64,000 nt of DNA from sequence record MT612988.1; one strand, written 5' to 3'. The position numbers were made by a program, and so were the translations under genes. Positions 1-48,242 of the stretch are shown piece after piece. The notes beneath the pieces were generated by a model, which was not told the origin of the DNA, made no database searches, and saw nothing but the letters and a program-made list of their open reading frames with translations. How positions within the stretch are numbered: the stretch's first letter is position 1; every line of letters starts with the position of its first letter.

Positions 1-1213
1 AACGCTTAACGAATTTCGTGAATTTCAGCTCATCACGCGAAATTTCAGTGCCTTGACCGAAGTTGATACCACCATTTTGATCTTCTGTCGCTGCGCGTGA
101 TGTAGGAATACGCATCGCTTTGTACAACTTACGATTGAAGTACAGAACGTCTTCGATGTCACCAAGTGACTGACCGCCAGGTAGTGTGCTTACTTCTGTA
201 CCCTTCGAACCTTCTCGGCGAGGAAGATAGTAATCTTCAAGCATTGACATTGCGTTAGTCGTATTCTTGACTTTACCTGTTGATGTATCATACACAATGC
301 GGTTTTTAACGTTTTGCATGATGCCGTTTACGTATTGCTGTGCTTTCTGAGTTGGCAAGTTACCTACGTCAACATAAAACACTCGACGTTCAGGTGCACG
401 TGCTAGACGGTATATTACCAATGCGTCTTCTAGCATCTTCAACTGGTTCGCAGGTTTAATTGCGCGATCTAAGTAGCCGATAATATACGGCTCGTCAGCA
501 CATCCCTTCATTAACCCGCTGTGAGCAAATACGATAGCATCTTTCGGAATTCTGAATGATGATTGTGAGCGAGAAGAACCACTCATCCATGACGGCATTT
601 TGTAATCAGATTGCTTGTAAACGTAATACTCAAGCGTGCCCTTTACAACTTCAACACCATCAATAGTCTCTTTTTGAATTTCGCGAACTAGTTCCATTTT
701 TGTCGGGTCTAGCGGGCGCAACTCAATGATATTATCTTCTTTGTCTAGAATTTTGTGAAAGTAGATTCGAGAATCAACGTACCATTTTCGAAACCACTTG
801 TAGCCGTGCTTACGCATCTGTAGTAAGCCAACCACTCGATCAAATTCTTCGTTAATTTTAGTCTTGATATTTTCTGAGAAGTCAGTGTTGTCTAAGTTCA
901 ACCACACAACTTCTTTATCGTTTTCATAAACGATAGCCTCATCGACGATTTCTTGAATAGCATCATCGACTTCGTGATATTCTGCTAGTGCTCGATATCC
1001 CTTTATCAACTCTTTTACGGGTACTGTCCCTTGAGCAGATTGACCGTCAGTCGGGATAAAGTTAGTTCCCATTTGAGGTGCTAATAAGTTAGTATGAATC
1101 TCTTTAGCACCATCTACGTTATCTGGCGCAGAAAACGAACGGACAGGGTTTTTATCGATTTGTTGTATTTCCTGTTCTTCTTCTTTCGCCCAGAATTTCA
1201 TAAACTCTAACAT
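1..1213 (-). CDS. gp20: portal vertex protein (runs off window edge)
   Basis: ATG at 1213 gives MLEFMKFWAKEE...SFSAPDNVDGA (T4 portal APDNxDGA motif). It lies directly downstream of gp19, and no stop is reached before the edge, so it is absent from the ORF track. Confidence 0.93.
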   Translation of the reverse strand, partial: MLEFMKFWAKEEEQEIQQIDKNPVRSFSAPDNVDGAKEIHTNLLAPQMGTNFIPTDGQSAQGTVPVKELIKGYRALAEYHEVDDAIQEIVDEAIVYENDKEVVWLNLDNTDFSENIKTKINEEFDRVVGLLQMRKHGYKWFRKWYVDSRIYFHKILDKEDNIIELRPLDPTKMELVREIQKETIDGVEVVKGTLEYYVYKQSDYKMPSWMSGSSRSQSSFRIPKDAIVFAHSGLMKGCADEPYIIGYLDRAIKPANQLKMLEDALVIYRLARAPERRVFYVDVGNLPTQKAQQYVNGIMQNVKNRIVYDTSTGKVKNTTNAMSMLEDYYLPRREGSKGTEVSTLPGGQSLGDIEDVLYFNRKLYKAMRIPTSRAATEDQNGGINFGQGTEISRDELKFTKFVKR

Positions 1214-1252
1214 ATTTTTACCTCAATAAAGGGGCAATTAAGCCCCTAGTCT

Positions 1253-1753
1253 TTAGTCCATTGTGAAGTAGTCTAGGCTGAATGTTACTTCAAACGTTTC
1301 GATTTCGTTGTTTGAGTCCCAATCAAGCGCAACTTCACCGACCATTGTTGGGAAGATACCGAATACAGTTGCTGAAGTAGTCGGGTCGCCATTACGGTCT
1401 AATTGCGTGATTGTACCAGTACGCTTGTACTGATCTGGCGTCTCACCTGAAATGTCTTTACCTAAGCCTACTGCACGAGCTTGCCATGCCAAGATAGCTT
1501 TACGAATGTCGTGATTCTCATCATTGTAAACCGTAACGTTCCAATCATCGAAAGTACGATCACCTGCGATGTTGTATTTACGGTTCTGATATGAGACCTC
1601 AAGCTTTTCAACGCTGCCCGGTGGCATAGAAGAAGCTCGACATTGGAATTTAAAATTTTGTCCCAGATACGGAATCTCAACTTCGAACAAGTTTGGACGA
1701 GCGAAATCACCGTTACTGAAAGCTCTTTTAATGTTGTCTACATTAAGTGCCAT
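1253..1753 (-). CDS. gp19: tail tube protein
   Basis: GDFARPNLFEVEIP, AGDRTFDDWNVTVYND; T4 gp19 motifs and synteny. Confidence 0.97.
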   Translation of the reverse strand: MALNVDNIKRAFSNGDFARPNLFEVEIPYLGQNFKFQCRASSMPPGSVEKLEVSYQNRKYNIAGDRTFDDWNVTVYNDENHDIRKAILAWQARAVGLGKDISGETPDQYKRTGTITQLDRNGDPTTSATVFGIFPTMVGEVALDWDSNNEIETFEVTFSLDYFTMD

Positions 1754-1804: not shown

Positions 1805-3820
1805 TTAGCCGATGATTTCTGCAAAGTCAGCGTCAGTTGACGTTGCTACGAAGTTCAGCGTAATGTAGTTGATTGACTTAGCAGGTTTCACGTAGATACT
1901 TGCTACAAACTCGTTTCTGTCGATGACAGACCCTGGGTTGTTTGTCTCATCACATACAACACGGAAATCGTAAATACCGCCTAGATCTTGAATGTTAGTC
2001 AAGTAAGCGTCGATTTCTGATTTGAAGCTTGAGCGTGTGAACTCATCGTTCAATTCGAATAGACGATACTTAGCAGCATCTGAGATCGCTTTCTTCAGCA
2101 AGTTGAACAGACGACGCACGTTAATGCGGTCAAATGCACTTGCTTGCTGTGTAGCAGTCTTATCACCGTATAGTACGAAGCCTTGACCTGCAAAGCCCAC
2201 TACAGGGTTAATACCGATTTGATATAGCGCATCACGGTGAGCACGACGTAGATCAACTGCTAGACGGTTTACGCCCTTGATTTGACCACGATTGAAGCCC
2301 GCTGGTGACATCCAAGGTTGAGAAACTTGGTCAGTGTAAGCACATAGACCTGCAATATCACCCGCTAGAGGAACCCAACGATTGCGATCTGAGTACTTGT
2401 CGTACTGATACTTATAGTTACCGTCAACCACTGCATAAGTCGTGCTTACGTTTAGATTGTCAGTTACAGGTTGACCGTTAGTCGGGTCGATACCCGTGCG
2501 CCAGCCTTGAATATTCGCTACTGCAACATGCGCTTGTTTGTTGATTACGTGAACACCCGGTGGCGATACGAAAACAACACAGTCTTGACGTACATTACCA
2601 ACTGAGTCAATCGCGTATTTCTGAACAGTCGATGCAATTGATAGCTCTTCTGCCGCAGCATTACCCGCAATGATCAAGTTTGTGTAAAGCACTTCTGGGT
2701 CAGATAGCATATCTAGACCAAGCATCCAGTCGTCTGCGCCAGCGTTAGCGTCGTAACCACCACCAAGATTGTATGCACCTGAGCCAGTATTCCAACCCTC
2801 TGCTATCGCAGTGATGTACGCAGAACCGCTATTTTCAAAGTACTCGTCGATGAAAATAGATTGACCGTTCACGTCTTTGTCACCTGGGTTCGTAGAAACG
2901 ATGAACGCTTCTTCAACTTCACCAGATACGCGAACAATTACAGCGTATTGGTTGCTGTTTGCAGGGCCGAAAGTGAAGTAACTAGCTAGGTTGATTGAAC
3001 GAGTACCACCATCTGGGTAGATTGGTAGATCGATGTCACCTAGTGTATGACCAGCCGCGAATGCAAATGCAGTCTGATAGTCGGAGTAGTTAATCACTTC
3101 AACAGAAATGTTGTCACCATAGCTACCAACATAACGTGCAGCAATACGAGAGAAACCTTGCTTCTCGATTAGATCAGCGTATTTCAATGCACCGCCTTCA
3201 GTTTCAATCTCTGTTAACGCACCTGTTGACAATTCGATATTAGGGAAGTATACTGAACCAGTATCGATAATTTCAATCGCAGAAAGTGCAATATCACCTT
3301 GAGTTGGTTGTAGTGTAACTGTACCCACGCCCGGGTAGTTCCCGTCAGCTTTAGCAGCCGCAACGATCTCTGCCGAAGGCAAGAAAATCTTAGTTGCTGC
3401 GTTGTTGTTACCCGCATCTACTTCAAGTACTTTACCTTTTTCAGTAAGCGGACCAACACCTGAGTAAGTAATCGTGATTTCATCACCAACAACACAGCCG
3501 TTTGATGCACCTAGCGTGTATTCAACAGCGTTGTATAATGCAGTCGCGTTCTGAGCACTTGACTCATCACAGATACGCACTAGACGTAGATCGTTACCAT
3601 ACTTCAAGAAGTTGTTCGCAGTCATGAATGATGCTGCGGTATAGTCGTTTGGACGACCGAAAATAGTAACCAAGTCGGACTCTGAAGTTACTTGAGTGAT
3701 GCTGTATGCTGGACCCCACTCAAATTTCCCCACCATAGCAGCACGCCCTGTAGACGCACGACCGATAGCACTTGCAAGGTTAATCTCTTTATTTTCGACA
3801 CCCGGAGATAAAAGAGTCAT
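1805..3820 (-). CDS. gp18: tail sheath protein
   Basis: MTLLSPGVENKE, FEWGPA, WMSPAGFNRG, FDRINVRRLF. Confidence 0.98.
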   Translation of the reverse strand: MTLLSPGVENKEINLASAIGRASTGRAAMVGKFEWGPAYSITQVTSESDLVTIFGRPNDYTAASFMTANNFLKYGNDLRLVRICDESSAQNATALYNAVEYTLGASNGCVVGDEITITYSGVGPLTEKGKVLEVDAGNNNAATKIFLPSAEIVAAAKADGNYPGVGTVTLQPTQGDIALSAIEIIDTGSVYFPNIELSTGALTEIETEGGALKYADLIEKQGFSRIAARYVGSYGDNISVEVINYSDYQTAFAFAAGHTLGDIDLPIYPDGGTRSINLASYFTFGPANSNQYAVIVRVSGEVEEAFIVSTNPGDKDVNGQSIFIDEYFENSGSAYITAIAEGWNTGSGAYNLGGGYDANAGADDWMLGLDMLSDPEVLYTNLIIAGNAAAEELSIASTVQKYAIDSVGNVRQDCVVFVSPPGVHVINKQAHVAVANIQGWRTGIDPTNGQPVTDNLNVSTTYAVVDGNYKYQYDKYSDRNRWVPLAGDIAGLCAYTDQVSQPWMSPAGFNRGQIKGVNRLAVDLRRAHRDALYQIGINPVVGFAGQGFVLYGDKTATQQASAFDRINVRRLFNLLKKAISDAAKYRLFELNDEFTRSSFKSEIDAYLTNIQDLGGIYDFRVVCDETNNPGSVIDRNEFVASIYVKPAKSINYITLNFVATSTDADFAEIIG

Positions 3821-38310: not shown

Positions 38311-38577
38311 ATGTCACAACAAACTGCTGAACAAGTAATCGAACAGAAAGACGCACAAATCAAAGATCTGAAAGTGCGTACCTTTGACCTACAAGAGACT
38401 CTTCAAGAAGAACGCAACTCTTTTGGTCAGTTCGTGGGTGTACTAGCTCAACTACTCGATTTCGATCAGGCGCAAGCAAGTTCTCTACAGAACTACGTTG
38501 ACGAAATCGCAATTCTAACCGGTAAAGCTGAACGTCCTGCTGAAGGCGACGGCGAACAAGAAAAAGACGCTGAATAA
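38311..38577 (+). CDS. gp57A: tail fibre assembly chaperone
   Basis: Coiled coil with LKVRTFDLQE; position between gp1 and 57B. Confidence 0.8.
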   Translation: MSQQTAEQVIEQKDAQIKDLKVRTFDLQETLQEERNSFGQFVGVLAQLLDFDQAQASSLQNYVDEIAILTGKAERPAEGDGEQEKDAE

Positions 38578-39032
38578 TGAAACTATCTAAGTTCCTTGAA
38601 AGTCAGGGAACTTACGTTGGTATCAGATTAGACGAGGCGAGTAAGCAAGAGTTAGTTCGATTGCAGAAAACGCTTCGTCTAAAAAATCCGTTAGAACCAG
38701 ATAAATTTCACGTGACTGTGCTTTATAGTCGTAAGCAAATTGATGTACCTGTTGTCGATACCACTTTCGTTGCTACTGTTGAACATATCGACTGTTGGAA
38801 AACGCAAGACGGCAAATATGCAGTTGTTGCTAAGATGGTATGTCCAGAACTTGTAGAACGTCACGATGATCTTATCTCTATCGGTGGTACTCACGACTAC
38901 CCTGACTATACCCCTCACGTTACGTTGTCTTATGACGACGCGATCACACCTATGCCCGTCAACGCTGAAGTTCGGCTTGTTGATGAATATCTTGAACCAC
39001 TTGATTTAAATTGGGTTGATAGTAATGACTGA
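38577..39032 (+). CDS. 57B: 2H phosphoesterase, anti-CBASS nuclease Acb1 homologue
   Basis: Two HxT motifs (HVTVLYS, HVTLSY), WKTQDG, GTHDYPDYTPH, EYLEPL.LNW as in T4 gp57B/Acb1. Confidence 0.9.
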   Translation: MKLSKFLESQGTYVGIRLDEASKQELVRLQKTLRLKNPLEPDKFHVTVLYSRKQIDVPVVDTTFVATVEHIDCWKTQDGKYAVVAKMVCPELVERHDDLISIGGTHDYPDYTPHVTLSYDDAITPMPVNAEVRLVDEYLEPLDLNWVDSND

Positions 39033-39940: not shown

Positions 39941-40010
39941 CTAAGGCAAATATAACTAGAGGATTTTTGGTGCTTGTGGTTAATCACAAGCACTCTCAAG
40001 AACATATTGA

Positions 40011-40132
40011 GCAGGGTTGGTGTAGTGGCTAGCACACGTAGCATAAACGCAAGCTGTTAAGTTTGTATTCTGCAATCAATTTAGCATATCATTTCCAAGA
40101 TCGTGACGCAGGTTCGAATCCTGCACCCTGCT
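40011..40132 (+). ncRNA. tRNA-Gly(TCC)-like RNA with a 49-nt insertion between positions 28 and 29
   Basis: GCAGGGT/ACCCTGC with U73; 8-nt loop ATTTCCAA; insert 40039-40087 holds a hairpin plus CTGCAA; no encoded CCA. Confidence 0.8.
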
Positions 40133-40150
40133 CAATATGTTTTTACATTG

Positions 40151-40264
40151 GTGAAGTTAGTTCAGTTGGTTAGAATGCCGGCCAAAAAAAACGAAGTCTG
40201 ATAAGATTTCATTCTGCATTCACATGCACGCCGGAGGTCGCAGGTTCGAGTCCTGCACTTCACC
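40151..40264 (+). ncRNA. tRNA-Asp-like body with ~43 nt inserted in the anticodon loop
   Basis: GTGAAGT/ACTTCAC, Asp-type D arm, CCGGC/GCCGG stem, T arm; insert has GAAGTC-TGATAA-GATTTC hairpin plus CTGCAT. Confidence 0.75.
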
Positions 40265-40274
40265 TTCAAATTCT

Positions 40275-40399
40275 GGAGAGTTAGCTCAGTCTGGTAGAGC
40301 AAAAGAATGTTAAAGAATACTGACAAGCATTCATGCTGCAAACCTTAATAACTAGGTAAATCTTTTTGTCACGCGGTTCAAATCCCGTACTCTCCACCA
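40275..40399 (+). ncRNA. tRNA-like RNA with an expanded anticodon loop
   Basis: GGAGAGT/ACTCTCC+ACCA, D arm, AAAGA/TCTTT stem enclosing GAATAC-TGACAA-GCATTC plus CTGCAA. Confidence 0.75.
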
Positions 40400-40413
40400 A
40401 TTTTCGAGGGTTT

Positions 40414-40782
40414 ATGAATAAGTTTAATGACATAAATGACGAACTTGATTGTATATTGCATCGTTGTGAGATTGTAAAGCGCAATCTTCGAAAATATTGT
40501 ACATTTGCTGTTGAAATGCAGTATAGACTTATGATAAACTTCATTGGCATGGGTTGCTATCAACAAGTTCTGCCGATATTAGACAATCTAAATTATCACC
40601 CTGATACAAGTCAGTTTGATAATATTGAGATTATGCAAACTATAAAAGAATTGATGAAATGTGCAGATAAGCTCGATTTGCTGCATCAACAAGACGCATT
40701 TCATCAAATTAAATCGACTGCTCGTATTACAGAAGAAGCAAACATCTTCGCTGCGAAAGTTGGTCGATTTCTAGAGAAATGA
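40414..40782 (+). CDS. hypothetical protein
   Basis: GAGGG RBS before ATG 40414; the track start overlaps a tRNA-like RNA. Confidence 0.7.
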   Translation: MNKFNDINDELDCILHRCEIVKRNLRKYCTFAVEMQYRLMINFIGMGCYQQVLPILDNLNYHPDTSQFDNIEIMQTIKELMKCADKLDLLHQQDAFHQIKSTARITEEANIFAAKVGRFLEK

Positions 40783-40783
40783 T

Positions 40784-40861
40784 GGCCCTATAGCTCAACA
40801 CGGTTAGAGCAACCGACTCATAATCGGTAGGTTACAGGTTCGAGTCCTGTTGGGGTCACCA
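40784..40861 (+). tRNA. tRNA-CAT (Ile2/lysidine type most likely)
   Basis: Cloverleaf, loop CTCATAA, GGCCC acceptor, CCA. Confidence 0.9.
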
Positions 40862-40881
40862 AAATAAATTGAAAAAAGTTG

Positions 40882-40910
40882 TTGACAGACGTTTCATCAA
40901 CGTGTAGTAT
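40882..40910 (+). promoter_or_regulatory. early/sigma70 promoter
   Basis: TTGACA-17 nt-TAGTAT. Confidence 0.8.
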
Positions 40911-40940
40911 ACACATTATCAACTACACGAGGAAAACATT

Positions 40941-41171
40941 ATGTCACATAAATTGCTAGTTATCACATCAATGCACGGTTGCTACGTCGATTACGATTTC
41001 AGAACTGAAATGTTTGACAGATACATGTGTGATGTTGTGATTCCGAACGACTCTGTTGTTTTGTACTCGGGTACAGTTTCAATAGATGAAATTCAAGCAG
41101 TTGCGAACGAATGTTACGCTGACATCAAGATTGAAGAAGTCAGTGATGATGTTTTTGACAGCTATCTTTAA
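40941..41171 (+). CDS. hypothetical acidic protein
   Basis: GAGG RBS, downstream of a promoter. Confidence 0.75.
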   Translation: MSHKLLVITSMHGCYVDYDFRTEMFDRYMCDVVIPNDSVVLYSGTVSIDEIQAVANECYADIKIEEVSDDVFDSYL

Positions 41172-41175
41172 AAAT

Positions 41176-41415
41176 GCCGCTAACTGGCGTACAATACACA
41201 GTGTATTCCCAACATTAGTGCAGACGTAGGCTCGCAACCTACGTTGGTACCGAATCACTGGGACCGAGTAGAAAGTGCATGTGAGATGTCGAAGTCTTGT
41301 ATGTAGAAATAACGCTCGGCTGCTCTGAAATGCTGATTAGCTCTTACTTCGAAACTCTAATTGGGTGGAAGAGGTGTTGTGTTTGACGTGTGTTCGATTC
41401 ACACGAGCGGCGCCA
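41176..41415 (+). ncRNA. 240-nt RNA with tmRNA-like tRNA termini
   Basis: GCCGCT/AGCGGC acceptor + GCCA, T arm GTGTG-TTCGATT-CACAC preceded by GAC, stemless D loop, helix ACAATAC/GTGTTGT. Confidence 0.7.
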
Positions 41416-41428
41416 AGAGGAAATTATA

Positions 41429-41950
41429 ATGAAACCATTGAAGTTCGTTGAAGCGTTCTCTAAAGAAGAACGTGCTGCTATGACGATTGAAGAACGTAGC
41501 AGACTTCGTAAAATATATAACGAACGCTATCAAGAGTATGTTGATAAGTACATCAATGTATTCACTCGAAAAGACTTTCGAAGAGAGCGTTGCTGGGTTA
41601 TTCTTGCACGATGTAAAAAGACTGGTGAAATCATCGGTCGAATTGAAAATAGTTTTAGTATGGGATGGTCTAAAGAGCGTGTTCGTGTTATTCGACCGTA
41701 TCTAAACGGTAATTTCACGGGCGATGACCGCTTCTCTAAAGCTGAGTACAACAAAGCGTGTGCTGAGTACATAACTCATCATGAGAAACAAGTAAAGTCT
41801 CTCAGAGAAGCTTACAAAGACACTCACGACGTTTTCTTATCTCGTGTGGGTAGTAAGAACTGTCCTGTTTCTATTGATTGGGATACGTATTACAGTAAAA
41901 AAGACAAACGAAACTTTGAATATCGAAATTTGAAATTCAAAGTTAAATAA
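41429..41950 (+). CDS. hypothetical basic protein
   Basis: GAGG RBS before ATG 41429. Confidence 0.75.
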   Translation: MKPLKFVEAFSKEERAAMTIEERSRLRKIYNERYQEYVDKYINVFTRKDFRRERCWVILARCKKTGEIIGRIENSFSMGWSKERVRVIRPYLNGNFTGDDRFSKAEYNKACAEYITHHEKQVKSLREAYKDTHDVFLSRVGSKNCPVSIDWDTYYSKKDKRNFEYRNLKFKVK

Positions 41951-41955
41951 TTCAT

Positions 41956-42071
41956 AGTCGGGTAGCTCAGTGGTAGAGCACGAAGAATGATACTGACAAG
42001 TATCGCTCCAGCACTCCTTCAATTGCCTGTTAAGCACGTGGTCGCTGGTTCGAATCCAGCCCCGACTACCA
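41956..42071 (+). ncRNA. tRNA-Asn(GTT)-like RNA with a 41-nt insertion between positions 28 and 29
   Basis: AGTCGGG/CCCGACT+ACCA; CG|TGC-CTGTTAA-GCACG; insert 41983-42023 has GATAC-TGACAA-GTATC plus CAGCAC. Confidence 0.82.
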
Positions 42072-42097
42072 TTTTTGATAAACTAGTGAGGTATAAC

Positions 42098-42334
42098 ATG
42101 AGCGGAACATTTAATATCAACAAAACGTTACTGACTCCGAAACAATTGCGCAATCTAACAGATGAGCGTCTGAATGAATATCGCAAGTCGTTTCGTAAGC
42201 CTCTTGGGTTTTTGAAGCATCTGAACGATACAAACGAATTGACTTCAGATCAGCACAAGAAATTCGTTGAGCTTAATAAGCACTACAACGACGAAATTCT
42301 TGCTGAAATGAACAAGCGAAAACACTTAGGTTAA
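42098..42334 (+). CDS. hypothetical protein
   Basis: GAGGT RBS before ATG 42098. Confidence 0.7.
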   Translation: MSGTFNINKTLLTPKQLRNLTDERLNEYRKSFRKPLGFLKHLNDTNELTSDQHKKFVELNKHYNDEILAEMNKRKHLG

Positions 42335-42604
42335 TAAAATCGCAGAAAATTGAAAAAAATTATCAATTTTCTGCGAAAATACCGCAAATCGTCAGATTTA
42401 GTGTTATAAGTACTATAAAGAAACAAAACAAATTTTAATTTTTATTTCAAGAGAGCATTCAATGACGCATTCGTTTACACATTCATCTGAGACATTACGC
42501 AGCGATTTTTTGCGCTCAGAATTCGTGTATCTAGCGAATCCGATTGCGAACCAGAAGTGGGATACCCTCTTGTAGTCCGATAGTATAACATAGAAGTATA
42601 CTTG

Positions 42605-42705: not shown

Positions 42706-42779
42706 CGGGACGTGGCGTAAAGGTAGCGTTCATGCTTTGGGAGCATGTGGTAAGAGTTCGAGTCTCTTCGTCCCGACCA
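42706..42779 (+). tRNA. tRNA-Pro(TGG)
   Basis: Cloverleaf, loop TTTGGGA, CCA. Confidence 0.93.
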
Positions 42780-42788
42780 ATTTAAAAT

Positions 42789-42865
42789 CCGTGACTAGCT
42801 CAATCTGGTAGAGTACTCCGTTTGGGGCGGAGAAGTTAAGCGTTCGAATCGCTTGTCACGGACCA
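42789..42865 (+). tRNA. tRNA-Pro(TGG), second copy
   Basis: Cloverleaf, loop TTTGGGG, CCA. Confidence 0.93.
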
Positions 42866-42872
42866 GTTTAAT

Positions 42873-42948
42873 GCCCGATTAGCTCAATTGGAAGAGCAGC
42901 GCCCTACGAAGGCGAAGGTTACAAGTTCGAATCTTGTATTGGGTGCCA
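42873..42948 (+). tRNA. tRNA-Arg(ACG)
   Basis: Cloverleaf, loop CTACGAA, CCA. Confidence 0.93.
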
Positions 42949-43150
42949 GTTAGTGTTGTTTGATTGAAGCTCGCTTTCGCACATTCCCGAAACTGCTTCT
43001 ACGAATTGATACGCTTAGGACCGTATCTCGTTAAGTACTGTCGAGATGATAGAATTTAACGAACTTTTCATAAATTAGTGTTTATGATGTCTTGAGCGAG
43101 TGTTAATATTAACACATAGAAAATGAAAACGTTAAGTTCTTCAAAATAAA

Positions 43151-43283
43151 TTCAAAAAGATGTTTACAACGATATAAACATCGTGTACAATGAAGAAAAG
43201 CGAAACATCATTCAAAATCGAATGAAAAGTTTTTCAAAAAAGATGTTTACAACGATAAAAACATCATGTACAATGAAGAAAAG
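43151..43283 (+). promoter_or_regulatory. duplicated early promoters (two ~50-bp direct repeats)
   Basis: TTTACA-17 nt-TACAAT at 43163-43191 and 43246-43274. Confidence 0.85.
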
Positions 43284-43301
43284 AAGTTTACAAAATTTAA
43301 T

Positions 43302-43378
43302 GCGCAAGTAGCCCAATTGGCAGAGGCACTGGTCTTAGAAACCAGAAGTTAAGAGTTCGAATCTCTTCTTGCGTACCA
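43302..43378 (+). tRNA. tRNA-Leu(TAG), short variable loop
   Basis: Cloverleaf, loop CTTAGAA. Confidence 0.9.
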
Positions 43379-43379
43379 A

Positions 43380-43454
43380 GCACCCTTAGCTTATCAGGAA
43401 AAGCGGCGGATTGAAGTCCCGCAGTGCTCGGTTCGATTCCGAGGGGGTGCACCA
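43380..43454 (+). tRNA. tRNA-Phe(GAA)
   Basis: Cloverleaf, loop TTGAAGT. Confidence 0.88.
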
Positions 43455-43543
43455 TATTATAGCTTGTTTGTAAGAGTTAAATCAAGCAAGGGGTTTTAGT
43501 TTTGGGTTATTTAGCAAACGCTCTTAACGTGAAAATCAAATCT

Positions 43544-43618
43544 GGGTCGTTCGTATAACGGTAGTACATCTGGCTTTTAACCAGAACGGTGAGAGTTCGA
43601 ATCTCTTGCGACCCACCA
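43544..43618 (+). tRNA. tRNA-Lys(TTT)
   Basis: Cloverleaf, loop CTTTTAA. Confidence 0.92.
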
Positions 43619-43629
43619 GATTTTATAAT

Positions 43630-43706
43630 GCGTCGGTAGCTCATCATGGAAGAGCAGGGAGCTTTTAACTCTCAGGTGTCTGGTTCGAGTCCAGGGCGGC
43701 GTACCA
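43630..43706 (+). tRNA. tRNA-Lys(TTT), second copy
   Basis: Cloverleaf, loop CTTTTAA. Confidence 0.9.
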
Positions 43707-43769
43707 AATTAGATACATTGTGTATCGCTTTGCAAGTTAGATAGCTTGCAAATCAATATACAATTTAAT

Positions 43770-43844
43770 TCTCCCGTGGACTAACGGTAGGTCATCACCC
43801 TTTCAAGGTGAAGTGCGCGAGTTCGAATCTCGTCGGGAGAACCA
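43770..43844 (+). tRNA. tRNA-Glu(TTC)
   Basis: Cloverleaf, loop CTTTCAA. Confidence 0.92.
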
Positions 43845-43850
43845 AATTAC

Positions 43851-43936
43851 GGAGCGTACGTCTCAAGGTGAGACAGGGGACTGTAAATCCCTGACCCTTA
43901 ACGGGTAGAGAGGTTCGATTCCTCTACGCTCCACCA
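43851..43936 (+). tRNA. tRNA-Tyr(GTA)
   Basis: Loop CTGTAAA, long variable arm. Confidence 0.92.
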
Positions 43937-43941
43937 GTTTT

Positions 43942-44028
43942 AGCTTGCATACTGCAATTTAACTTAATCTATTGATCGCTCGGCGAACTCAGTTCAGACA
44001 GCGATAAACAGACCAAAGAACGCAAGCT
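43942..44028 (+). ncRNA. free-standing helix-CTGCAA RNA
   Basis: AGCTTGC/GCAAGCT closing helix, ATA-CTGCAA, inner ATCGCT/AGCGAT hairpin. Confidence 0.65.
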
Positions 44029-44038
44029 GTTGAATAAT

Positions 44039-44115
44039 TGCGGGGTAGAGAAGTGGTCATCTCGTCGGTCTCATAAGCCGGAGAACGCTGGTTCGAATCC
44101 AGCCCCACGCAACCA
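44039..44115 (+). tRNA. tRNA-fMet(CAT)-like, bulged acceptor stem
   Basis: TGCGGGG/CCC(A)CGCA-ACCA, loop CTCATAA. Confidence 0.8.
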
Positions 44116-44161
44116 AATTTATTTCGACTAAATATTGTTTTACGCAATAAGGAAAATTACA

Positions 44162-44404
44162 ATGAAAACATTTGATGAATTCATTACCGAGTCGAAAGAT
44201 GTTACTTTCGGAGTTTCTGGCTCACTTTTTAGTGGTGCAATGGATAGAGAGAGACATCGAAACATGATGCAAAAACTTGGCGCTGTTAGAGACACCAAAT
44301 CAAAATCACAAGATAATGTTTGGGTTGTCAGTCAAGCGAATGCTGATGCAGTTGAAGAATATCTTAGTCAGTTTGATAAGCTGATGTGGGGTAGACACAA
44401 ATAA
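44162..44404 (+). CDS. candidate internal head protein (capsid-targeting sequence)
   Basis: MKTFDEFITE|S; late-promoter-like ACTAAATA at 44127. Confidence 0.75.
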   Translation: MKTFDEFITESKDVTFGVSGSLFSGAMDRERHRNMMQKLGAVRDTKSKSQDNVWVVSQANADAVEEYLSQFDKLMWGRHK

Positions 44405-44410
44405 TTAATT

Positions 44411-44509
44411 GGAAGGCTTAGCCGAGAGATTCTGGGTAGCGGCAACGGTCTTGAAAACCGTCGGTCACCGGGAGGTGATGTTAGGGTTCGAATCCCTAGT
44501 CTTCCGCCA
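44411..44509 (+). tRNA. tRNA-Ser(TGA), enlarged D loop
   Basis: Loop CTTGAAA, long variable arm. Confidence 0.88.
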
Positions 44510-44573
44510 ATTAGTTAACCGGTAAGTTTAGTCACTTAACCGATTAACACGAGCACTGAAATGTGCTCACTTT

Positions 44574-44647
44574 AGTCCCTTAGCTCAACGGTAGAGCGTG
44601 CGACCGATAATCGCTTGGTAAGAGTTCGATTCTCTTAGGGACTACCA
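44574..44647 (+). tRNA. tRNA-Ile(GAT)
   Basis: Loop CCGATAA. Confidence 0.9.
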
Positions 44648-44653
44648 AATTTT

Positions 44654-44727
44654 AGGGGCATGATGTAAAGGCAGCATGACGGATTCCAAACCCGTTCGTT
44701 AGAGTTCGAATCTCTATGCCCCTGCCA
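44654..44727 (+). tRNA. tRNA-Trp(CCA)
   Basis: Loop TTCCAAA, G73. Confidence 0.9.
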
Positions 44728-44732
44728 GTTTA

Positions 44733-44790
44733 AGTAATCTTACAGCAAACAATACAAAACTTTTATTTGGAAAAAGCAAAAAGGATTACT
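44733..44790 (+). ncRNA. free-standing helix-CAGCAA RNA
   Basis: AGTAATCT/GGATTACT helix, TA-CAGCAA, inner CTTTT-ATTTGGA-AAAAG anticodon-like hairpin. Confidence 0.65.
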
Positions 44791-44802
44791 GTTTAAATTC
44801 AA

Positions 44803-44877
44803 GGGTGTGTAACTCAGAGGCAGAGTAGCAAGCTGTTAACTTGCAAGTCGAGATTTCGAAATTCTCCACGCCCGCCA
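44803..44877 (+). tRNA. tRNA-Asn(GTT), atypical T stem
   Basis: Loop CTGTTAA. Confidence 0.85.
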
Positions 44878-44878
44878 C

Positions 44879-44954
44879 GCTTCATTAACTCAGTTGGTAG
44901 AGTGTCTGACTGTTAATCAGAGAGTCGTTGGTTCGAGTCCAACATGAAGCGCCA
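44879..44954 (+). tRNA. tRNA-Asn(GTT), second copy
   Basis: Loop CTGTTAA. Confidence 0.93.
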
Positions 44955-45023
44955 AATTCGGAGAGTCACTACCGTTAAGTGTGAACTTGAAAAAACAAAG
45001 CAACTAATTTAAGTTGTCTTTGG

Positions 45024-45099
45024 GGAGCCGAGGTGTAAAAGGTTGCATGTCTCCCTGTCACGGAGAAGGTAGCGGGTTCGAAACCCGTCGGTTCCGCCA
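45024..45099 (+). tRNA. tRNA-Asp(GTC)
   Basis: Loop CTGTCAC. Confidence 0.92.
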
Positions 45100-45118
45100 A
45101 AGATAATTTAAGAACAAT

Positions 45119-45192
45119 TGGGGATTGGTGTAAAGGCAGCATAACGTACTTTGAATGCGTTGGTATCAGTTCGAATCTGTTATCCCCAGCCA
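45119..45192 (+). tRNA. tRNA-Gln(TTG)
   Basis: Loop CTTTGAA, U1-A72. Confidence 0.92.
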
Positions 45193-45201
45193 AATACCAT
45201 A

Positions 45202-45315
45202 GAGTGTTTTCAGCAAACAATTTACTAATATTCTTCTGATGAAAAGAAAAGTTCGAGGTTCGATTCCTCTTCAGTGTCGGTATCACTGGTCTGGACGACG
45301 CTAGTAATAACACTC
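45202..45315 (+). ncRNA. circularly permuted tRNA mimic (YrlA-like topology) with CAGCAA
   Basis: GAGTGTT/AACACTC closing helix; order is CAGCAA, anticodon-like hairpin, T arm, loop-capped stem CAGTG/CACTG, D-like GTC-TGGAC-GAC. Confidence 0.75.
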
Positions 45316-45321
45316 AGTTAC

Positions 45322-45396
45322 GCTCCTGAAGCATTGATGGCGATGCAGCGGTCTTGTAAACCGCAGAATTCGGTTCGATTCCGAACGGGAGCACCA
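45322..45396 (+). tRNA. tRNA-Thr(TGT)
   Basis: Loop CTTGTAA. Confidence 0.92.
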
Positions 45397-45421
45397 TATT
45401 GATTAGAAAGTGTTATCATGA

Positions 45422-45429
45422 TATAAATA
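45422..45429 (+). promoter_or_regulatory. late promoter TATAAATA
   Basis: Exact consensus, 31 nt upstream of the 45460 ORF. Confidence 0.8.
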
Positions 45430-45459
45430 GTCATGTAACTACATTTTAGAGGTAATAAC

Positions 45460-45735
45460 ATGTCTATTAAAACATTTTCTGAATATCTTAACGAAGCAAA
45501 GCATCGTGGGTCTGGCGTAGACACTCATGACGGTAAGATTCCGTATGTATACGCTGACAGTAAAGACGCTGCTGCATTTGCTGATTTCGTATCGTCAATA
45601 GGTATGAAGCTTGATTCGAACGGTGAATTGAAGCTTTCTACACGAGATAAAGTACGAAAGTTCTTCTCAGAGCTTGATCAAGAAGCAACTAATTTCATGC
45701 TTCATGGCAACTTTGATATTATTGAATATATGTAA
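45460..45735 (+). CDS. candidate internal head protein (capsid-targeting sequence)
   Basis: MSIKTFSEYLNE|A; late promoter and GAGG RBS. Confidence 0.78.
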   Translation: MSIKTFSEYLNEAKHRGSGVDTHDGKIPYVYADSKDAAAFADFVSSIGMKLDSNGELKLSTRDKVRKFFSELDQEATNFMLHGNFDIIEYM

Positions 45736-45750
45736 AAATTGGTGATTGTA

Positions 45751-45960
45751 ATGGTATATATTTCTGTATGGTGTGAATATGACATTGGTGGGGATTTCGG
45801 TGGCAACAATAACGAAGATGTTTTTTCCGTTAGTGAAGAATTATCTAATGAAGAAGTTGAAGCAAAAGTTGCTGAATATATTTCTGACATTGTTGGTGAG
45901 CCGATTGAAGAACTTGAAGGTTTATACGGTTGGGAATATATTTCAATCACACAGTTGTAA
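45751..45960 (+). CDS. hypothetical acidic protein
   Basis: GGTG RBS before ATG 45751. Confidence 0.65.
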   Translation: MVYISVWCEYDIGGDFGGNNNEDVFSVSEELSNEEVEAKVAEYISDIVGEPIEELEGLYGWEYISITQL

Positions 45961-45967
45961 AAAATAT

Positions 45968-46042
45968 GGGCCGTTAGCTTAATTGGGAAAGCGCCTCACT
46001 TGCAATGAGGAAGATAGGGTTCGACTCCCTGCGTGTCCACCA
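45968..46042 (+). tRNA. tRNA-Ala(TGC), irregular acceptor stem
   Basis: Loop CTTGCAA, G3-U70. Confidence 0.82.
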
Positions 46043-46116
46043 AATTTCGAACACATGAGCGTAGACTCTCTTTACTACCATCGTCTACACTAGTTCATGG
46101 TTCGAATCTTTTCAAT

Positions 46117-46192
46117 GCGCTGTTAGCTCAATTGGAAGAGCACGTCCCTTCTAAGGATGGGGTTATGAGTTCGAATCTCATACGGCGTGCCA
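46117..46192 (+). tRNA. tRNA-Arg(TCT)
   Basis: Loop CTTCTAA. Confidence 0.93.
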
Positions 46193-46204
46193 TATTAAGC
46201 TCTT

Positions 46205-46715
46205 ATCATGCGACGAATGATACTTTGCTTCGGCATATCACGAGCATGGTGAGAGAGACAATATACAGCAAACAATTGAAATTACTTAAAAGAAGTGATG
46301 ATCTTAACCTGGGCTGATTTTAACCTGAGCTTGCTTAGGCGCAGCTTGAAAGGAAAGATTCTCTCTGTCTAGAAATAGTCAGATAGGCGCGTCGCTGAAA
46401 CAGACGATATTTGCTTGTTGAGAATCAATAAGCTAGTCAACTCCGATTTATGCAAAAGACGAAAAAACACTTCGGTATTGTCTGTACTTAATTCGTCGGA
46501 AACGACACTGTAGCCGAAAGGCAAGATACGCTAACTTAGATGTTAGCAGCGATATAGGATGTATCGCGTGGCATTATTATGAACGTTTCTAGTCATCGTC
46601 ATGTAAAACAATCAAAACTAAGCAGAGGTAACAGTACCCACTATGTGGTTCCTCACTCAGACCATGAATATATGGTGTCAGCCAGTGTGCGATTAAATGA
46701 GTTAATTACTGCAAT
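46205..46715 (+). ncRNA. ~500-nt highly structured non-coding region containing a helix-CAGCAA module (46252-46366)
   Basis: Many stable hairpins (C-UUCG-G and GAAA tetraloops); no RBS-led ORF. Confidence 0.6.
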
Positions 46716-46716
46716 T

Positions 46717-46792
46717 GGTGATGTAGCTCAAGTGGCAGAGCAACGCTTTCATACGGCGTAAGATCCGATTTCGAGTATCGGTGTCACCTCCA
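46717..46792 (+). tRNA. tRNA-Met(CAT), atypical (U73, T stem lacks G53-C61)
   Basis: Cloverleaf, loop TTCATAC. Confidence 0.75.
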
Positions 46793-46812
46793 AATTCAAA
46801 AACAAAGAGGTT

Positions 46813-46977
46813 ACGAAGCATGACTACTTTACACTAAGCAAGGGCAACATACGCGATAAAATTCGATATGTTGAAAAATGTCTCGCGAATGAGACCAACC
46901 CGTTCTTTATAAGAACACTTACTGTAGAGCTTACGAATCTACGTGCAATACGTGATTTGTTCGACGCTTCAGATTAA
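46813..46977 (+). pseudogene. 54-codon open frame beginning ACG after a GAGG RBS
   Basis: KHDYFTLSKGNIRDKIRYVEKCL...; no ATG in frame. Confidence 0.4.
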
Positions 46978-46981
46978 CAAT

Positions 46982-47055
46982 GCGGGTATGATGTAATGGT
47001 AGCATGACGTCCTTCCAAGTCGTTCGTCTCGGTTCGAGTCCGTGTACCCGCTCCA
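46982..47055 (+). tRNA. tRNA-Gly(TCC)
   Basis: Loop CTTCCAA, U73. Confidence 0.9.
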
Positions 47056-47061
47056 AATTTT

Positions 47062-47135
47062 GGTCCCTTAGTATAATGGCAGTACGTCTCTTTTACACAG
47101 AGAAAGAAGTGGCTCGATTCCACTAGGGACTACCA
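47062..47135 (+). tRNA. tRNA-Val(TAC)
   Basis: Loop TTTACAC. Confidence 0.88.
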
Positions 47136-47158
47136 TTCTTTATGATGAGAAATAAATT

Positions 47159-47398
47159 ATGACGCCTGCATTACTTGAAACTCATGAATACGTAAACCAC
47201 AACCAAATCGAAAAGCTACAGCAAATGGACAGACTTATGTTTGATTGTTGGCGTGCTGGGTATAAACGTGGCAAGATTTTAGAGCTTGCATTGTCGATTG
47301 AGTCTTCAACAACCGAAGCAGACATCGAAATTTATTTCAAAAATATGTTTACAAGAGAACTATCGGCTGATAGTATCTACTTAAAGAAAACTGTATGA
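47159..47398 (+). CDS. hypothetical protein
   Basis: 79-aa ORF between tRNAs, GAG RBS. Confidence 0.65.
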   Translation: MTPALLETHEYVNHNQIEKLQQMDRLMFDCWRAGYKRGKILELALSIESSTTEADIEIYFKNMFTRELSADSIYLKKTV

Positions 47399-47550
47399 CG
47401 GAGTAGTGCTCCGACCGAATGACACACGCAAATGAGTCCGGTTGACAAACGTTATATGTCCCAAAGTATTGCAGGTAGCGACGGCGGTGTTGCTAGTAGA
47501 TTTATCTATTTCTCCAAGACATAATGCAAGCTTTTAAAGTGTACTTTGGT

Positions 47551-47627
47551 GTGGCAGTGGGTGAAGTGGAAATACCCCCGGGTTGTGATTCCGGAAGATG
47601 CGGGTTCGATCCCCGTCTGTCACCCCA
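47551..47627 (+). tRNA. tRNA-His(GTG)
   Basis: Loop TTGTGAT, C73. Confidence 0.9.
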
Positions 47628-47639
47628 AAGTACATTTAT

Positions 47640-47713
47640 GCTCGAATCGTATAATGGAAGTATGACGGATTGCAAATCCGCAGGTCAGGGTTCGATTCCC
47701 TGTTCGAGCTCCA
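47640..47713 (+). tRNA. tRNA-Cys(GCA)
   Basis: Loop TTGCAAA, U73. Confidence 0.9.
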
Positions 47714-47715
47714 AT

Positions 47716-47792
47716 GCGCACGTGGTCCAATTGGCAGAGGCATGAGGCTTAAAATCTCAGGGATGGCGGTTCGAATCCGCCCGTGCGTACCA
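47716..47792 (+). tRNA. tRNA-Leu(TAA), short variable loop
   Basis: Loop CTTAAAA. Confidence 0.9.
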
Positions 47793-47908
47793 AATTCTAG
47801 CATAAGCCGCGTTCTATACGAAGCTAGACTACCGCCGTTGAAAAACGGTCTCAGCCGAGCGAAAGCTGACAGGTGTTAGGGATTAAAGAGTCGCGGCAGT
47901 TTATTCAA

Positions 47909-47985
47909 GCCCAACTAGTCCAATTGGCAGAGGCACTAGTTTCAAACACTAGGAGTTCCGAGTTCGAATCTCGGGTTGGGCACCA
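47909..47985 (+). tRNA. tRNA-Leu(CAA), short variable loop
   Basis: Loop TTCAAAC. Confidence 0.9.
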
Positions 47986-48153
47986 AATTCACTTAGCAAC
48001 GCGAATCGAAAGAGAGTGGATAGACCTGCTAAGAGTCCCGCTAGGTCTTTAAATTATCTAAAGTGGATCTGCGAAGCGCGTGGCACACGTCAGCAATAAG
48101 AGCAAATATGTGTCTGAGCATGAGAGCAGCATGCCATTAATTGATGAGACGTT

Positions 48154-48242
48154 GGAAGCATGGTCTAAAGGTATGACAGCACCCTGCTAAGGTGTCGGAC
48201 GTTAATAGCGTTCTCTGGGTTCGATTCCCAGTGCTTCCGCCA
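48154..48242 (+). tRNA. tRNA-Ser(GCT)
   Basis: Loop CTGCTAA, long variable arm. Confidence 0.92.

Follow-up and report, generated by a model that had tools for sequence, protein, structure and literature searches.

What kind of gene occupies positions 41176-41415 (plus strand) of the DNA analysed here is the question raised by this locus, which the original prediction had described as a tmRNA-shaped RNA of 240 nt lacking alanine identity. The whole stretch analysed (the window, 64,000 nt) matches at 100% identity Vibrio phage vB_ValM_R10Z, a KVP40-like relative of T4 in the genus Schizotequatrovirus. The element lies in the phage tRNA region, between tRNA genes, with an ORF of 76 aa before it and an ORF of 173 aa after it, and carries no annotation in the records of KVP40 and R10Z. 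The two flanking proteins showed no informative domains and belong to phrog_18680 and phrog_15953, both of unknown function. ARAGORN called 28 tRNAs in the whole window, to which Rfam added a tRNA at 45968-46039 that ARAGORN had missed and three long genes resembling tRNAs; a CCA is encoded in each of the 29 ordinary tRNAs, including every member of a dense cluster at 42706-48242. A homologue of Acb1 (anti-CBASS 2H phosphoesterase, 57B in T4) was found at 38577-39032 (plus strand; Pfam E = 8e-46), 2 kb upstream of the element and just ahead of the tRNA region, an arrangement comparable to that at the T4 tRNA cluster.

By blastn over the phage collection, the element was found in 49 vibriophage records and in no others, and a further blastn search, with the most divergent member as query, added nothing to these 49 vibriophages. 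Motif scans yielded KVP40 and VH7D alone in IMG/VR, six matches, all due to chance, in the JGI metagenomes, and zero matches in 185,579 bacterial and archaeal species genomes. A distant homologue of the downstream protein is encoded on a 369-kb viral contig, with no element adjacent to it. No Rfam family matches the element, and no description of it was found in the literature searched, which did not extend to the KVP40 genome paper. Twelve orthologues of 236-241 nt, sharing 59-94% identity, were aligned; they represent about seven clades (R10Z/VH7D, KVP40/phi-pp2/PG216, D482, F86, VS1/QD01, nt-1/CZ01 and 1.081.O). Each genome locus holds one copy. In nt-1 and CZ01 the element is preceded by tRNA-Met, in the other phages by an ORF; the downstream gene varies too, and the spacing from the element to the next start codon is kept across clades despite the changing neighbours. 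The element is a portable, autonomous, single-copy module.

From the alignment, RNAalifold predicted 68 base pairs, of which 36 had compensatory changes. An unbiased all-against-all column scan revealed an 8-bp helix, P6, which was superior to two small RNAalifold hairpins in columns 163-208; these hairpins were superseded by the covarying P6, and the final model after this revision comprises 63 pairs. Standard pairs fill 94.2% of the cells of the 63-pair model, as against 37-45% when the partners are slid by one to three columns, and none of 500 shuffles equalled any of the observed structure measures. The covariation across relatives that had been called for was clearly found, with two-sided (compensatory) change at 38 of the 63 pairs, a count that draws on few independent lineages because the family is limited to one phage group (49 records, about seven clades). 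Invariant columns make up 50% of the unpaired positions and 28% of the paired ones, and 1-nt indels occur at six alignment columns; the higher conservation of the unpaired columns together with these indels indicates a structured RNA and not a coding region. The single-sequence MFE z-score is just -1.64, which counts against the explanation favoured below.

The ends of the element form a tRNA-like module, and the acceptor stem, T arm, stemless D region and 7-nt-loop hairpin that had been read from the sequence are all present in 41176-41415. The acceptor stem P1 pairs 41176-41181 (G1-U6) with 41406-41411; its 6 pairs, 4 of them with compensatory changes, are formed in 100% of the cells, and an A7/G66 mismatch is present in every homologue. 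All 12 homologues have U at position -1, which is what an RNase P site would show. A stemless D-loop analogue of 10 nt (41182-41191) carries an invariant GG (41186-41187), the counterpart of tRNA G18-G19, and the column scan detected no supported pairing, i.e. no D stem, in this segment. The stack of D stem and anticodon stem is replaced by the long helix P2, in which 41192-41201 is joined to 41377-41385 by 9 pairs (100% paired, 3 compensatory, of the kinds AU/UA and AU/GC). A helix of this sort had been proposed in the register ACAATAC/GTGTTGT; the long helix is real, but that register is unsupported and breaks in the VS1/nt-1 clade, and covariation places the pairing at the coordinates given here. 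A linker of 2 nt leads from P2 to the T arm GUGUG-UUCGAUU-CACAC (41388-41404), which has a 5-bp stem with compensatory changes at 4 of 5 pairs and a canonical loop, UUCGAUU, invariant bar one position. The acceptor, T arm and P2 helices are each 90-100% paired. In R10Z the module ends with the discriminator G73 (41412) and an encoded CCA (41413-41415). With its D stem absent and a long helix replacing the anticodon arm, the module does have the layout of the tRNA-like domain of tmRNA, as had been recognised at the outset.

Three further arms, referred to here as the cargo, lie between the strands of P2. Arm 1 (41207-41263) is closed by P3 (41207-41211 with 41259-41263) and continues in inner stems (41214-41230 with 41238-41255) capped by the 7-nt loop L3 (41231-41237), the sequence of which depends on the clade; 13 of its 20 pairs are compensatory. 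It contains the inner hairpin ACGUAGG-CUCGCAA-CCUACGU (41224-41244) and the near-invariant GAAUCAC (41252-41258). Arm 2 (41265-41318; 15 pairs, 12 compensatory) consists of P4 (41265-41268 with 41315-41318) and the covarying P5 hairpin (41276-41287 with 41294-41305), whose hexaloop L5, GUCGAA (41288-41293), is invariant. Arm 3 is the 8-bp stem P6 (41333-41340 with 41357-41364), paired in 100% of the cells, in which the alignment pair 169/191 alternates between UA, AU and UG; it bears the 16-nt near-invariant loop L6, CUCUUACUUCGAAACU (41341-41356), and is followed by the junction J6/2 (41365-41376). Counted by segment, the invariant columns are 6 of 6 in L5, 7 of 8 in the GAAUCAC stretch and 13 of the 17 in the L6 stretch. 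L5 and L6 each have a T-loop-like UUCGA, the columns of which are all invariant, and these two loops could contact one another, the element's own elbow or another tRNA.

Environmental RNA variants show extra compensatory changes in P5, at 41285/41296 and 41286/41295. A variant in run X3 has GUCGGA in place of GUCGAA at 41288-41293 and a 1-nt deletion at 41233, within the 7-nt loop of arm 1; L5 and the arm 1 loop are therefore not absolutely fixed in nature.

Several other structures were considered and rejected. A 95-nt alternative fold resembling tRNA-Sec, with GCUGCUC at 41319-41325 paired to 41405-41411, can be drawn in the R10Z/KVP40 clade alone, and the Rfam tRNA-Sec match on the 3' 95 nt is below threshold (14.1 bits, E 3.6). 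The core positions of a hammerhead-like CUGAU...CGAAAC are not kept (D482 reads CUAGUAA), the segment corresponds to the 5' strand of P6, and no Rfam ribozyme match was obtained. An antisense RNA against a target in the window was also discarded, as loop L6 has no match there beyond the element itself.

The RNA data consisted of assembled metatranscriptome contigs from two independent studies; they represent related environmental phages of about 96% identity and are not R10Z reads. In the RNA runs 0.48 of the element's sampled words were found, as against 0.07 for the surrounding 1.6-kb stretch. When contigs were mapped on 40000-42400, those of 229, 203 and 172 nt fell wholly within the element (41189-41414, 41209-41412 and 41205-41376, respectively), and the contig depth was zero over both flanking ORFs (40891-41133 and 41458-41943). 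The zero depth of the flanks and the confinement of these contigs to the element indicate a discrete, comparatively stable RNA. The discrete transcript that the original prediction presupposed therefore exists; it has a tRNA-type 3' end, and neither its exact termini nor a non-templated CCA appeared in these assembled contigs. We concluded that the element represents a genuine and new family of RNAs, found in KVP40-like vibriophages only.

The strongest sigma-70-like promoter match of the region, TTGACA-17-TAGTAT at 40882-40910 (plus strand), identified by consensus match only, stands directly after tRNA-Met and ahead of the 76-aa ORF, and probably drives a transcript comprising this ORF, the element and the downstream ORF. 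No terminator-like site was detected between the element and the next ORF, and the next ribosome-binding site begins directly after the 3' end of the element. Because the best promoter precedes the upstream ORF and no terminator follows the element, the RNA would have to be cut from a longer transcript.

The nucleotides by which the tRNA-like end might be identified are conserved in part. C3-G70 is present in 12 of the 12 homologues and G1-C72 is likewise invariant; pair 2:71 varies, and the discriminator is G, A or C according to clade. The encoded CCA, G73 and the GAC ahead of the T stem, all listed in the original prediction, do occur in R10Z but are specific to the R10Z/KVP40 clade, the other clades having discriminator A or C and no CCA. 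The element is without an encoded CCA in D482, F86, 1.081.O, VS1, QD01, nt-1 and CZ01 (five of about seven clades), and the CCA of the R10Z/KVP40 clade is one base apart from the F86 sequence. The adjacent tRNA-Met has an encoded CCA in six of the seven CCA-less phages, CZ01 not being among those checked. The variation of discriminator, CCA and GAC suggests that selection acts on the shape of the tRNA-like end and not on its identity for aminoacylation or SmpB binding. Action of the tmRNA type requires that a single conserved synthetase charge the RNA, and the non-conserved identity nucleotides speak against this. Such variation fits a putative role of the end as a handle for processing and stability; the tmRNA-like topology and the invariance of C3-G70 and G1-C72 could also reflect recognition of the end itself by a specific factor. 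As to the novel class of CCA-ended RNAs that had been proposed, the RNA is indeed conserved, covarying and discrete and falls in no Rfam family, but 'CCA-ended' does not hold family-wide in the genomes.

The explanation that we tentatively favour, with somewhat less than even confidence, is a tRNA-scaffolded non-coding RNA, in which the tRNA-like module would provide for excision and protection and the three-armed cargo would be the working part that binds a partner. The gene product would be a non-coding RNA, stable and about 237 nt long without its CCA. It would have the build of a tRNA in which a three-armed cargo domain of about 175 nt takes the place of the anticodon arm, and would be transcribed within a polycistronic message of the phage tRNA region. 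The minihelix of acceptor stem and T arm, together with the elbow of GG and T loop, would be recognised by RNase P, whose cut would leave G41176 as the 5' end, and the same module would be a substrate for tRNA 3' maturation. In T4, RNase BN/Z and the CCA-adding enzyme mature those tRNAs that have no CCA in the gene; in a comparable way, the RNA of the CCA-less clades would undergo cleavage of the RNase Z/BN type and then CCA addition. The tRNA-like module would thus serve as a handle for excision and stabilisation, while the cargo arms would display the near-invariant loops and junctions GUCGAA, CUCUUACUUCGAAACU, GAAUCAC and CAGUGU. That the strongest conservation is found in the loops and junctions of the cargo suggests tertiary folding or a surface for binding, and the cargo probably adopts a compact tertiary fold and binds a partner in the infected cell, be it a protein, an RNA or a ligand. 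The proposed split into scaffold and cargo, which we infer from the conservation patterns, is supported by three more tRNA-bodied RNAs with a conserved anticodon-loop module in the same phages and by T4 RNA C, which also joins an acceptor/T-arm end to a hairpin cargo.

A comparison with tmRNA (RF00023, clan CL00001) is called for by the layout of the ends. Both RNAs have the acceptor stem, a canonical T arm, a stemless D region with GG and a long P2 in the position of the anticodon arm, enclosing a large structured insert; both are stable, and the element would likewise be processed by RNase P. However, tmRNA has the G3-U70 alanine (AlaRS) determinant and usually A73, whereas the element, as the original prediction had noted, has C3-G70 and, in R10Z, G73. 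The resume codon, tag frame, stop and C-terminal degradation signal of tmRNA have no conserved equivalent in the element; no counterpart of the tmRNA pseudoknots (PK1, usually PK2-4, between P2 and the tag region) is supported, the arms being modelled as plain hairpins on a multi-helix junction; and the element's discriminator is variable and its CCA mostly not encoded. With 237 nt, the element is no longer than the smallest tmRNAs. Three-frame analysis of the 12 homologues bore out the remark that no tag ORF is visible: the open frames stop at different alignment columns, with unrelated C-termini, and none is conserved. No covarying crossing helix (pseudoknot) was detected by the all-against-all column scan, in which the candidates AGUG/CACU and UCGAA/UUCGA sit in invariant columns, where covariation is uninformative.

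The tmRNA scans suggested at the outset also returned nothing: Rfam gave no tmRNA match on the element at the gathering threshold or up to E = 10, and ARAGORN did not call it at the default or 90% thresholds. At thresholds of 80-85%, ARAGORN called a tmRNA with exactly the element's ends in R10Z, KVP40, VS1, nt-1 and QD01, with the report 'tag not identified' and peptides different in each clade; on shuffled DNA the relaxed setting produced about 13 tmRNA calls per 64 kb. With no tag and so many calls on shuffled DNA, the relaxed call therefore just restates the tmRNA-like look of the ends. Given the invariant C3-G70, the absence of a conserved tag frame and the lack of an Rfam or default-ARAGORN match, the tmRNA reading was rejected, and we concluded from these sequence features that the element does not act as a tagging tmRNA.

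A tag-less analogue or decoy of tmRNA is a different matter. Its tRNA-like domain would bind SmpB and/or EF-Tu and enter or block stalled ribosomes, thereby inhibiting or diverting host trans-translation during infection. The tmRNA topology of the domain, with P2 joined to the T stem by the 2-nt linker, the exact ends of the relaxed ARAGORN calls in five phages, and the arm-hairpin-arm order of the cargo, which loosely parallels PK1, helix 5 and PK2-4 of tmRNA, would all agree with such a decoy. We nevertheless regard it as unlikely: all 12 homologues have C3-G70 and not G3-U70, the discriminator is variable, most clades have no encoded CCA, the GAC is not conserved, and there is no frame with a conserved end or C-terminus and no covariation-supported pseudoknot; the tmRNA searches, moreover, were null in Rfam to E = 10 and in ARAGORN at default and 90%, and the relaxed setting is noisy on shuffled DNA. 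More doubtful still is a phage-made, tag-less, non-alanine counterpart of tmRNA that SmpB, EF-Tu or a phage factor would bring to stalled or empty A sites, where it would block or re-route the ribosome rescue of the host; such an RNA, if it exists, would have no known viral precedent in targeting trans-translation.

Mitochondrial tRNAs and plant t-elements punctuate polycistronic transcripts, and the tRNA-like end of the element might merely direct RNase P and 3' nucleases to cut between ORFs, the released RNA being functionless. This would agree with a position between ORFs, where a ribosome-binding site follows immediately and there is no terminator, and with variable flanking genes and the behaviour of a portable module. 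A minimal acceptor/T-arm hairpin would suffice for punctuation, however, whereas the element has a cargo of about 175 nt that is kept in length, forms three covarying arms and contains the most conserved nucleotides of the whole; the released RNA, in addition, accumulates relative to the flanking mRNA. We consider mere punctuation distinctly improbable.

The element might also be a tRNA-like RNA that can be aminoacylated, or a tRNA gene interrupted by a very large intron, and would then act as an amino acid donor for translation or for a tRNA-dependent enzyme. Features that such an RNA would share are the canonical acceptor stem, T arm and elbow nucleotides, the CCA of the R10Z/KVP40 clade, the invariant G1-C72 and C3-G70, and an inner 7-nt loop with Y32-U33-like features. 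Yet the D arm and the anticodon arm are both absent, the 'anticodon' of the loop is CGC or AAU according to clade, position 37 is U in half of the clades, and the discriminator is not conserved. Rfam RF00005 was null to E = 10, the sub-threshold tRNA-Sec match being the sole weak match in the tRNA clan, and ARAGORN was null with a 300-nt intron allowed. A tRNA with a large intron, a group I intron and a known ribozyme were all rejected for want of Rfam or ARAGORN matches, and we hold a chargeable tRNA-like RNA to be very improbable.

GenBank CDSs overlap the element in D482 (VPHD482_0399, locus 1379-1495, minus strand), F86 (VPHF86_0308, locus 1229-1333, plus strand) and QD01 (QD01_344, locus 1207-1338, plus strand); these calls, which differ in strand and frame, are probably spurious. 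That the region codes for a small protein, as open frames of 13-49 codons and these annotations might suggest, is hardly tenable, because stops and frames are not conserved, 1-nt indels occur at the six columns mentioned above, substitutions in the stems are compensatory, and the annotated ORFs vary in strand and position.

For the favoured explanation, a tRNA-scaffolded non-coding RNA, the closest analogues are T4 RNA C/D, without detectable homology. The T4 species 1 and 2 RNAs (rnaC and rnaD) are stable small RNAs encoded at the edge of a T4-type tRNA cluster, and RNA C has a canonical T arm and an acceptor-like stem enclosing a hairpin cargo. Shared with the element are a gene in the tRNA region, Acb1/57B nearby and a discrete stable RNA, which for the element is known from contigs only. 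The likeness to RNA C/D that had been pointed out thus extends to the niche and the tRNA-like end, but not to detectable homology. The T4 RNAs are 139 and 119 nt long, against 237 nt for the element, and their cargo architecture is unlike. The covariance model of the element scored 10.4 bits on T4 rnaC, on the tRNA-like end only, and 11.6 bits on T4 tRNA-Arg; since rnaC is scored no better than an ordinary tRNA, no homology to it is indicated. The function of T4 RNA C/D is still unexplained after about fifty years, and there is no trans-acting small RNA of known function in a T4-type phage (PMC3014915). In an evolution experiment, a convergent SNP arose in T4 rnaD during adaptation to a semi-permissive host (PMC12685909).

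At the 90% thresholds of ARAGORN, T4 rnaD and rnaC (T4 locus 2910-3163, minus strand) were jointly called as one tmRNA-like gene of 254 nt, to which rnaD supplies the 5' domain and rnaC the T arm and 3' end. The two may be pieces of a tRNA-ended RNA similar in size to the element; the joint call could just as well be an artefact of the threshold.

The three long tRNA-like genes of the window (KVP40 tRNA-Pseudo-3/4/5; 40151-40264, 40275-40396 and 41956-42068; 113-122 nt) combine ordinary acceptor, D and T arms with an insert of 43-54 nt at the anticodon loop. The tRNA bodies resemble different tRNAs (Asp-like, Asn GUU-like and Ile/Val-like), and one module recurs in their inserts, namely a covarying hairpin of 7 bp, closed by a GNNA loop, and then AUNCNGCA. 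These genes are conserved in KVP40, D482, F86, VS1 and nt-1. With the element they share tRNA-type ends, extra structured RNA at the anticodon loop, the region and the phage group, but they keep the D arm and score 50-54 bits as Rfam tRNAs, neither of which is true of the element, and no homology was detected between their insert module and its cargo. The inserts are not simple introns, because the first gene has no CCA and its anticodon is not restorable by removing the insert. No splicing of the pseudo-tRNAs was found in the RNA contigs; one contig 'joint' was rejected as splicing, as it had foreign flanks and belonged to another organism's tRNA-Asp.

YrlA (RF02553) is likewise a non-coding RNA with a tRNA-like module used outside decoding. 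In YrlA the tRNA-like module lies inside the molecule, whose two ends pair as the Ro-binding stem; this arrangement is reversed in the element, whose ends are the acceptor stem itself. Rfam gave no YrlA match on the element, and the YrlA matches in the region were junctions of adjacent tRNAs only. In the tRNA scaffolds of Ponchon and Dardel, a cargo RNA is reportedly grafted in the place of the anticodon loop, and tRNA processing and fold excise and protect it. The principle would be the same, but these scaffolds are a laboratory design, whereas the element is natural and has also lost the D arm.

The element belongs with the stable tRNA-like-ended phage RNAs and the tmRNA-type tRNA-like domains, as a separate family without established function. 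It would be a larger relative in kind of T4 RNA C/D, with far better comparative support. At a minimum, spurious CDS calls can be corrected and an RNA family missing from Rfam can be added. The secondary structure is clear and the invariant loops can be mutated singly; KVP40-like phages and their Vibrio hosts are culturable, so that deletion and pull-down are practical. Together with the three pseudo-tRNAs, the element suggests that KVP40-like phages routinely use tRNA bodies as natural scaffolds. Should SmpB, EF-Tu or a tRNA-targeting defence prove to be engaged by the tRNA-like end, the element would represent a new kind of viral interference with translation or immunity.
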